Source: Salpingoeca rosetta | Lineage: Eukaryota > Protista > Choanoflagellata | DNA length: 64,000 nucleotides | Assembly: GCA_033442325.1 (NCBI GenBank) | Contig: JAWQFM010000029.1 | Coordinates: forward strand, 59,066-123,065 | Reading direction: 5' to 3' | Shown: piece by piece, positions 59,225 through 61,540 of the stretch | Layout: each line of letters opens with the position of its first letter | Numbering within the stretch: the first letter of the stretch is position 1 | Notes under the pieces: model-generated | Seen by the model: the letters and a program-made list of their open reading frames with translations, nothing else | The model's database searches: none | Told to the model about the DNA's origin: nothing | Translations under genes and position numbers: made by a program

Positions 59225-61540
59225 TCACGAGGCCAACGCGGCGAAAATAGCAATGACAATAGCAAAGGCGCCAAACGCCACAGCCAGGATGAGCAGCCGA
59301 CGCAACACACGCGACTGCGATGCCAGCGATGACGATGATGCTGACGACAGTGCATGGCGCGTCCTAGACGACCGCTGCCGAGGCTGTGACGTACGAGCAG
59401 GTGATGCAGAGCCCACCACGGACGGCTGTGGTGACGATGATGTTGACGATGACGGGATGGTTGGAAGCGGTGGTGCTGTTGCCGACTGCCCCCGACGCCG
59501 CCTCTTCCATGCGATGCCTGTAGACGACGATGGCGGTGACGATGTCGAGGTTGGCGCCGACGATGATGATGCTGGTTTGGATTTGGACTGGTGCCTGGCG
59601 TTTGGTGCTGCATGAAGGACAGCAAGCTGGCCCGCACTCAACAGCCGCGAGGATTTGAACTGCGATGAACGCCTGTGCCGCTGCTGCTGCCGCCGTCGCT
59701 GTTGCTGCTGCTGCTGGCGGAAGGGTTGATATGACTGCGCGGAGAAGTGGGAGGCGGTTGATGTGTCTGATGTGTTCGACTTGTACGTGCGTGTGGATGC
59801 ATTTGACACAACGCGTCCACGCTGGCGAAGGGGAGGCGCTGATGCAGCCACTGACGGGAGCGACGCTGTCGGTGGCGGCAGGCCCGCGTTCCATAGCGCA
59901 CGCTGGCGCTGGGCGGCAGCAGCAGACGATGACGAGGACGACGATGCTGTGGATGATGTTGGCGACAGTTTCTTGGTCGTTGCCGTGCCTTCGGAGAGGT
60001 TGGTCACACTCTGGCTGTGGAGGCGGTGTTGCTGCTGCGCTTCCACAGCCCATGGCGTTGTCGACAGCAGCTGTGGCGGGCCAGTGCTGTTGGTGATGCT
60101 GTTGCTGTTGGTGTTGTTGTGCTCGTAGTTGGTGGCGTCGTTTGTGTGAGTGGCACTGCTACCGAGAGCGTCCACGTTGAGGGTGGAGCAGGAGCGAGCA
60201 AGGCTGATGGCCGATGCGTGGAGGGCAACCGGTGACAGCCGTCCAAGCTGCACTGCATCCAGTTGAAGGTCGCTCAAAGACATGTCCGACATGAATGAGG
60301 GCTGCCCACTCACCCGCGCAGCATGCATCGTGTCCCTGCTCATCACAAACAGCAGTAGAAAAAAGCGGGGAGGGATTAGGATGAGCAACGCATGCAAAGA
60401 GGACATCATCTTACACATCCACAGTAAGCAAACACGCACACACACACACACACAACCACACACACACACACACACACCGCACACACACACACACACACAC
60501 ACACACACACACACACACACACACACACACACACACACACACACACACACACACACACACACACACACACACACACATGCATGTCGCATGCACACACACA
60601 CACACGCACGCACGCACGCACACGCACACATACATACACACATGCACGCCCACACATGCATAACGCGACGTACTCCGCTCTGACTCGACGCCGAGGCCTG
60701 CGCGCTTTCCAAGGCGCCACATGCCGATATACTCCACCATGCGACCGCCATCACCCCAGGTCTGCTTGCCGAGCTTGTCCTTCTGCCCCTGTGTCCAGTC
60801 GCCGGCATACACGTTGCGGCGGCAGCTGCACCACACGCCGAGACCGTCGGACTGCCCCTGCGTCCACTCGCCAGCGTACCACGAGCCATCGCTCCACAGG
60901 TACACGCCAAGCCCGTTCTGCTCGCAGGCAGAAAGGTCATGGCGAGGGTGGGGGGTAATTGCAGTCAACTTCAATGCGAGGAACAGGCAGCCATGCAGAT
61001 CGGAACATGGGCAGACGGGCAGATTGACATGGGCAGACTAACACAACACACACGTATGCAAAATACACACAACGAACACACACGAACATACAGCACACTC
61101 ACACACGAACACATACATGCATGCGCACCTCCTTGCCGTGGCTCCATTGGCCGCAATAGAGCCAGCCCTCAGGAGACCGCTTCACGCCAACCCCGTGTGC
61201 AACGCTGTTGTCAATCTCACCCGTGTACCTGCCACACCAAAATGGAACAGCAACGGGTGAGTTCAGGGCATTCGCACAAGATAGTGTCACCAACGTGAAA
61301 TGCCGCCAACTAAGCATCATGTGTGAGGAGGTTGCAACGCTTGACGCAGGAGACTCACGCGCAGCCATCTGGCCAGTCGACGTGGGCAATGTCCAGGTGT
61401 GTGTTGATGCCGAAGATGCCTGGGAGGGCGCCGTCATCGTCCTCTTCCGCTGTTTCCCTGGACGTGCTCAGGGACCGCCGGAACGGCAGCGATGCCTGCT
61501 CGTGATGGAAGCTGGACGCCCGCCGAATCAACACTTTCAT
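59225..61540 (-). CDS. Junctophilin-like protein: N-terminal MORN repeats, Ser/Gln-rich region, C-terminal transmembrane anchor
   Basis: Exons ~61540-61360, 61227-61128, 60917-60674 and 60335-59225 join in frame: VDWPDGCAYTGEIDNSVAHGVGVKRSPEGWLYCGQWSHGKE-NGLGVYLWSDGSWYAGEWTQGQSDGLG. Ends RRLLILAVAFGAFAIVIAIFAALAS*. Confidence 0.78.

Follow-up and report, generated by a model that had tools for sequence, protein, structure and literature searches.

We analysed a 64,000-nucleotide stretch of the genome of the choanoflagellate Salpingoeca rosetta (GenBank assembly GCA_033442325.1, contig JAWQFM010000029.1, positions 59,066 to 123,065 of the forward strand; hereafter the window). On its minus strand, the gene PTSG_09072 probably (at about 0.6) represents the S. 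rosetta orthologue of a junctophilin-like, tail-anchored family of MORN proteins; in the assembly it has no exons for MORN6-8 and the helix. In muscle and neurons, surface Ca2+ channels are coupled to internal stores at membrane junctions that junctophilins build, and the origin of these proteins bears on the evolution of excitation-contraction coupling. An earlier note on this DNA had taken the locus for a simplified pre-metazoan form of a junctophilin-like tether that links the endoplasmic reticulum (ER) with the plasma membrane. That it is a simplified ancestral form could not be upheld. Sister species possess the full architecture, which makes the S. rosetta form a derived one, produced either by deletion or by collapse of the assembly, and not a primitive one.

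The annotated gene consists of five exons totalling 1641 nucleotides, that is, 547 codons with the stop counted. The translation of exon 5 was a 100% match to the NCBI entry 'hypothetical protein PTSG_09072' (source record GCA_000188695.1, scaffold GL832981.1). The exons were translated and searched singly, and the database protein, P0001, stands in for the complete product. The gene is laid out in window positions as follows.

59225-61812, minus strand: gene PTSG_09072 of S. rosetta (P0001), 546 amino acids.
61791-61812, minus strand: exon 1, the start exon (MASPSKP) of 22 nucleotides, placed from the P0001 sequence, the locus span of 2588 nucleotides, and the exon sums.
61359-61533, minus strand: exon 2, the N-terminal extension and the beginning of MORN1, ending VDWPDGC(A); donor GC/GTGAGT.
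61129-61228, minus strand: exon 3, MORN1 and the first half of MORN2 (YTGEIDNSVAHGVGV..YCGQWSHGKE); Pfam MORN, E = 6.3e-5.
60685-60917, minus strand: exon 4, NGLGVYLWSDG..GLGV(E), the remainder of MORN2 and MORN3-5; Pfam MORN, E = 2e-12; donor GA/GTCAGA.
60336-60684, minus strand: intron 4, 349 nucleotides, for the most part a (GT)n array (60432-60642).
59225-60335, minus strand: exon 5, a 369-codon open frame with a post-helix motif, the linker rich in Ser, Ala, Thr, and Gln, a second motif, the tail-anchor helix, and the stop.

An open frame as long as that of exon 5 has a chance of about 5e-5 at this composition. The start assumed in the earlier note, an in-frame ATG at 61540, lies inside annotated intron 1, 7 bases upstream of the exon-2 acceptor.

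Five MORN repeats were counted by eye in P0001 (YTGEIDNSVAHGVG; YCGQWSHGKENGLG; YAGEWTQGQSDGLG; YAGDWTQGQKDKLG; YIGMWRLGKRAGLG), and the whole protein scored 47.6 bits (E = 1e-12) against Pfam MORN (PF02493), for which the gathering cut-off is 22.5. The linker comprises 343 residues, most often Ser (23%), followed by Ala (12%), Thr (9%), and Gln (9%). At the C-terminus, LLILAVAFGAFAIVIAIFAALA contains the best 19-residue hydropathy window of the protein (2.98), and residues 518-546 are the sole segment with a hydropathy above 1.6. AlphaFold predicted a helix at 517-545, with values of the predicted local distance difference test (pLDDT) of 88-94, in a model with a whole-chain pLDDT of 41. Having a lone hydrophobic helix near the C-terminus and neither an N-terminal signal nor another transmembrane segment, P0001 has the sequence features of a tail-anchored protein, and a low-complexity, divergent region leads into its C-terminal transmembrane segment as in junctophilins. 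The earlier note had reported about five MORN repeats, a single C-terminal tail anchor, and no evident second MORN block or backbone helix. Our analysis agreed on each count: Pfam MORN was matched in exons 3 and 4, a single membrane helix was predicted, and the second block with its helix was absent both from the gene and from the whole assembly.

An exhaustive HMMER search with residues 50-260 of P0001 against 1.84 billion representatives returned 34,398 MORN proteins, and most of the top scores were sums across many repeats of long proteins. The matches of highest identity were P0007 (51%) and P0008 (48%), each of them one N-terminal block with the same offset as in the query. By cluster look-up, P0007 and its longer isoform P0151 (509 amino acids, EP00043_P006378) were Microstomoeca roanoka transcriptome proteins, and P0008 (EP01147_P001334) was a Barroeca monosierra gene model. 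In the reciprocal search of the S. rosetta genome, P0008 recovered the PTSG_09072 locus first, with 98.7 bits versus 32.5 bits for the next MORN locus. The three choanoflagellate proteins were 54-61% identical over the N-terminal block of MORN1-5; taken by exon, identity was 62% to M. roanoka (local tblastn) and 59% to Barroeca for exon 4, and 57-61% to P0008 for exon 3. It is very likely that PTSG_09072 is orthologous to the M. roanoka and Barroeca proteins, and on the sequences compared the family is present in at least three related choanoflagellates.

Both P0151 and P0008 contain eight contiguous MORN repeats, a pseudo-MORN (WKN), a helix predicted to span some 56 residues, and then a disordered linker that leads to a tail anchor. 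After GLGVE, they continue with three more repeats, a WKN(G/N) half-repeat, and then an Ala-rich region of about 80 residues, and their hydropathy peaks at the extreme C-terminus, as in P0001. Their linkers span 107-133 residues, versus 343 in S. rosetta. P0008 carries a 45-residue hydrophobic insert (168-212) right after GLGVE that is unmatched in M. roanoka and S. rosetta; located where S. rosetta has intron 4, it is probably an unspliced intron in the gene model. The M. roanoka isoform P0007 (418 amino acids) departs from P0151 after ..QDHFL and ends without a terminal membrane helix; it is probably an intron-retention transcript, or possibly a soluble splice form.

Outside the repeats, the following segments of P0001 have counterparts in both relatives.

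61508-61533, minus strand: RRASS-type motif (P0001 8-16, P0151 7-15, P0008 7-15).
60257-60325, minus strand: motif 1, HAARVSGQPSFMSDMSLSDLQLD (P0001 181-203), with 12/23 BLASTP identities to Barroeca HAIESGTPFFLGEITLSELQLD (E = 1e-4).
59621-59644, minus strand: motif 2, LLSAGQLA (P0001 408-415), corresponding to LLTAGQFA in M. roanoka and LKNAGELA in Barroeca.
59231-59296, minus strand: predicted tail-anchor transmembrane helix, LLILAVAFGAFAIVIAIFAALA (P0001 524-545), followed by Ser and then the stop (59225-59227).

Motif 1 is homologous to the Barroeca segment that follows the helical region, was found at the same position in two alignments, and has a pattern common to the three proteins (HAxxSGxPxF..LSxLQLD). 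The pattern of motif 2, LLxAGQ(L/F)A, occurred 3 times in 162,814 background residues. Motifs 1 and 2 and the tail anchor stand in the same order in all three proteins, with motif 2 upstream of the membrane helix; from motif 2 to the C-terminus there are 131 residues in S. rosetta versus 50-51 in the relatives. The orthologues have these two motifs, in this order, as well as the tail anchor, which is good if indirect support for placing exon 5 in one gene with the MORN exons. A GTGAGT at 60308-60313 was considered as a real donor that would shorten exon 5 and was rejected, since it sits within the conserved motif 1. All three proteins carry the N-terminal motif, (L/I)LRR(A/G)SS(F/Y)..EQA..F, ahead of the MORN array. 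Its RRASS sequence fits RRxS, the classic basophilic kinase consensus, which suggests a candidate regulatory phosphosite.

In S. rosetta, GLGVE runs straight into motif 1, and about 185 amino acids (MORN6-8, the pseudo-MORN, and the helix) are absent compared with the relatives. The M. roanoka isoforms split exactly before TAQKRAVEGGQSSW, which is aligned to the first residues of S. rosetta exon 5, and the unmatched insert of Barroeca sits exactly where S. rosetta exon 4 ends. The boundaries of the missing block thus appear to coincide with introns of the relatives, and S. rosetta intron 4 has the look of a fusion, with the donor taken from one apparently shared intron and the acceptor from a later one. 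The missing block was found neither in the whole window by sensitive tblastn nor in the 55-Mb, 68-contig assembly by a six-frame search with P0008. When the genome was searched in six frames with a profile of the block, every match was confined to the generic MORN positions 3-95. No second copy of either flank of intron 4 was found in the assembly, both flanks being single copy. The exon-4 donor, within a Glu codon, and the exon-5 acceptor have the same phase; therefore, provided that this donor is native, a deletion would stay in frame.

A real deletion and an assembly artefact leave the same sequence signature. The most serious alternative, which we consider possible but clearly less probable, is that S. 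rosetta has a full-length gene and that two introns had their (GT)n tracts fused in the assembly, with the loss of 1-2 kb holding the exons for MORN6-8 and the helix, so that annotators were forced onto a weak donor to hold the frame. In its favour, each breakpoint is intronic, at a site that the relatives apparently have as well; a (GT)n array of 210 bp makes up most of the hybrid intron (microsatellites occur in introns 1 and 4); and both sister species keep the block. Other properties of the locus count against a real in-frame truncation. The annotated exon-4 donor, GTCAGA, looks weak; a stronger-looking one, A/GTACGT (GT at 60672-60673), lies 11 nucleotides downstream, out of frame with the exon-5 acceptor, and its use would cause a frameshift. 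A collapse is possible, since the 64-kb window has four N gaps and comes from a draft assembly. In addition, the GC content at third codon positions (GC3) of exon 5 is 0.65, versus 0.73-0.83 in the MORN exons (0.83 in exon 4). Nevertheless, none of the 68 contigs holds the missing exons or a second copy of the intron flanks, and intron 4 is contiguous and free of N. The exon-5 linker, moreover, has diverged, and the distance from motif 2 to the membrane helix has grown by about 80 residues, as would fit a long period of independent evolution. Given the absence of an orphan contig, the N-free intron, and an exon 5 that has drifted, expanded, and come to a lower GC3, we favour a real in-frame deletion as the likelier origin of the gene and infer that the truncation is biological and not an assembly error.

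The relationship with animal junctophilins was assessed against the plan given in PMC8916002 (Fig. 1A). It comprises eight N-terminal MORN repeats with a joining region between MORN6 and MORN7, a pseudo-MORN, a backbone helix of about 56-60 residues that packs on the MORN sheet and has an alanine face, a divergent low-complexity region, and a terminal transmembrane segment. Like animal JPH1-4 (7RW4, 7RXE, 7RXQ, 9UO9), P0001 has the MORN register at its N-terminus, the low-complexity region, and the C-terminal membrane helix. The M. roanoka and Barroeca proteins share with them also the eight repeats, the pseudo-MORN, and the long helix, and are collinear with JPH2 over 255 positions. Unlike animal junctophilins, S. 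rosetta has five repeats, and the pseudo-MORN and backbone helix are absent from its gene and from the whole assembly. All three choanoflagellate proteins differ from the animal ones in lacking the joining region between MORN6 and MORN7 (this gap is a turn of normal length in P0151) and in having an N-terminal extension of 45-57 residues with the RRASS-type motif; the solved JPH chains, without such an extension, align from residue 9-10.

The repeats retained in S. rosetta and those it lacks gave different signals. As the earlier note had stated, the N-terminus of P0001 parallels animal junctophilin: residues 59-150 align with JPH1 9-99 in register from the first repeat (37.6 bits), and the atypical GxE of repeat 2 recurs as WSHGKE in S. 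rosetta and WSHGFE in JPH1. This parallel is real yet not specific, as stretches of MORN1 reached 40-42 bits in the same search. A profile of the orthologues' second block, in contrast, gave its best matches among solved structures to JPH1/JPH2 (64 bits, E = 1e-16, versus 49.6 bits for MORN1), its positions 36-154 being aligned to JPH1 178-299 through MORN7-8 and the pseudo-MORN into the helix. With the whole-domain profile, positions 52-306 matched mouse JPH2 10-287 in one stretch of 255 positions (85.6 bits). MORN1 obtained 90.3 bits, but across only about 120 positions, and JPH2 was the sole solved protein aligned across the whole domain in one stretch. In an AlphaFold model of the M. roanoka domain, built from a three-row alignment and of low confidence (pLDDT 43.5), MORN hairpins were followed by strands at 240-253 and a helix at 266-321. 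Six of the seven small residues of this helix that M. roanoka and Barroeca have in common (A273, C274, A280, A287, G294, A298, and A301) fall within an 80-degree arc, and on this model the small-residue face of the P0151 helix would match the alanine face of the junctophilin backbone helix (PMC8916002). The description of PTSG_09072 as a junctophilin-like component consequently stands as regards family membership, by way of the eight-MORN relatives collinear with JPH2; by score, the part retained in S. rosetta is not closer to JPH than to MORN1. From the collinear architecture and the modest sequence signal, we consider it probable that the family is homologous to animal junctophilins.

Several results speak against this homology and would fit an unrelated, generic MORN family that acquired its tail anchor independently of animal junctophilins. 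On the retained N-terminal block, RSPH1 and MORN1 scored as high as JPH or higher (97 bits for MORN1 versus 67 bits for JPH1). The joining region is absent, a profile of the orthologues' helix alone found no match in the PDB, and the helix has no detectable sequence similarity to that of JPH. Word-based protein searches yielded P0001 itself or generic MORN proteins and no named junctophilin, and feature searches of the ESM Atlas gave generic MORN clusters only (<0.9). Both AlphaFold models, of P0001 and of the M. roanoka domain, are of low confidence, and a Foldseek search with the latter gave template-modelling scores of at most 0.31 with MORN1 and JPH ranked alike; considering the poor model and this ranking, we rejected the Foldseek result as evidence on the fold. 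We nevertheless regard an unrelated origin as improbable. The number and order of modules in the orthologues (eight MORN, pseudo-MORN, a roughly 56-residue helix, disordered region, transmembrane segment) equal those of the junctophilin in PMC8916002, JPH1/JPH2 are the top matches for the second block, and JPH2 alone among solved proteins matches the entire domain without a break. MORN1 of Trypanosoma, Toxoplasma, and Plasmodium (6T4R, 6T69, 6T6Q, 6T4D) and RSPH1 do give the highest raw scores for the retained repeats, but these proteins are soluble, cytoskeletal or axonemal, without a long helix after the array or a membrane anchor, and their matches are out-of-register repeat matches of at most about 120 positions. 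Independent published work, cited below, has also named a S. rosetta protein as a JPH homologue.

Least probable of all is a decaying gene, in which a real deletion was followed by use of the GTACGT donor, a frameshift, and a stop eight codons into exon 5, leaving a soluble five-MORN protein of about 190 amino acids without membrane anchor and the exon-5 frame as a relic: the GT at 60672-60673 is indeed nearer the usual consensus than the annotated donor and out of frame with the acceptor at 60335, and GC3 drops in exon 5 below that of exons 2-4, but a relic would hardly be expected to preserve a 369-codon frame with both its tail anchor intact and two motifs conserved, the GTGAGT in motif 1 is read through as conserved coding sequence, and the MORN exons are still 59-62% identical to those of the orthologues.

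If the S. rosetta gene is indeed a truncated orthologue, the donor after MORN5 would be joined to the acceptor of the last exon, giving in frame five MORN repeats, the disordered linker of 343 residues, and the tail anchor. The C-terminal helix would enter the ER membrane post-translationally, the cytosolic gap would be spanned by the disordered linker, and, as with junctophilins, the N-terminal MORN sheet might engage a plasma membrane protein or the membrane itself; by analogy with junctophilins we infer a function in tethering the ER to the plasma membrane. The RRASS site in the N-terminal extension would be a possible kinase switch. Lacking a backbone helix, the sheet of five repeats would be similar to MORN1, MORN4, and other MORN proteins of the helix-free type. 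Should the truncation be real and the product functional, PTSG_09072 would be a natural 'mini-junctophilin' in which a long disordered linker connects five MORN repeats to a tail anchor, a proposal that we put forward tentatively. Tethering would then need neither the backbone helix nor MORN6-8, and PTSG_09072 and the full-length proteins of Microstomoeca and Barroeca would jointly define the state of the junctophilin family before metazoans. The joining region binds L-type channels in animals, and under the same proposal it would appear to be an animal innovation.

A JPH homologue of S. rosetta is already cited in two reviews, and the central claim of the earlier note is in that respect not new. 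According to PMC8934682, S. rosetta was identified by Mackrill and Shiels (2020) as the most basal organism that has a JPH homologue; the same source reports that no homologue was found in Monosiga brevicollis or Capsaspora. PMC9527923 states that a single JPH homologue is encoded by choanoflagellates. PTSG_09072 itself was named in no paper recovered by our literature search. It may be the published homologue, and it is the only S. rosetta locus matching the family. Two points appear to be new, namely the complete architecture of the Microstomoeca and Barroeca proteins, which has no joining region, and the loss of an internal part in S. rosetta. S. rosetta is the model species, the one open to experiments, and the internal deletion that its copy appears to carry matters for studies of pre-metazoan junctophilins there.

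Some minor features of the locus and genome were also recorded. Exon 4 has a tandem acceptor (gag/cag/AAC, 60918-60923, minus strand). The annotated distal site gives HGKENGLG, equal in length to HGKEHGLG and NGKEQGLG of the relatives, and the proximal one would insert one Gln in MORN2. In transcript orientation, a (CA)n tract stands right before the acceptor of intron 1 (61565-61637), the long (GT)n of intron 4 follows the donor (60432-60642), and a GT-rich array (59048-59209) begins 16 nucleotides past the stop codon. The four N runs of the window are at 62462-63122, 8331-8809, 10131-10940, and 32946-33045, and the first of these, of 661 nucleotides, begins 650 nucleotides upstream of the annotated start codon of PTSG_09072. 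The S. rosetta genome contains at least about 17 separate MORN loci, two of which, 10 kb apart on contig C13 (603210-603552 and 613497-613838), had identical genome-scan scores, suggesting a recent tandem duplication of a MORN gene.

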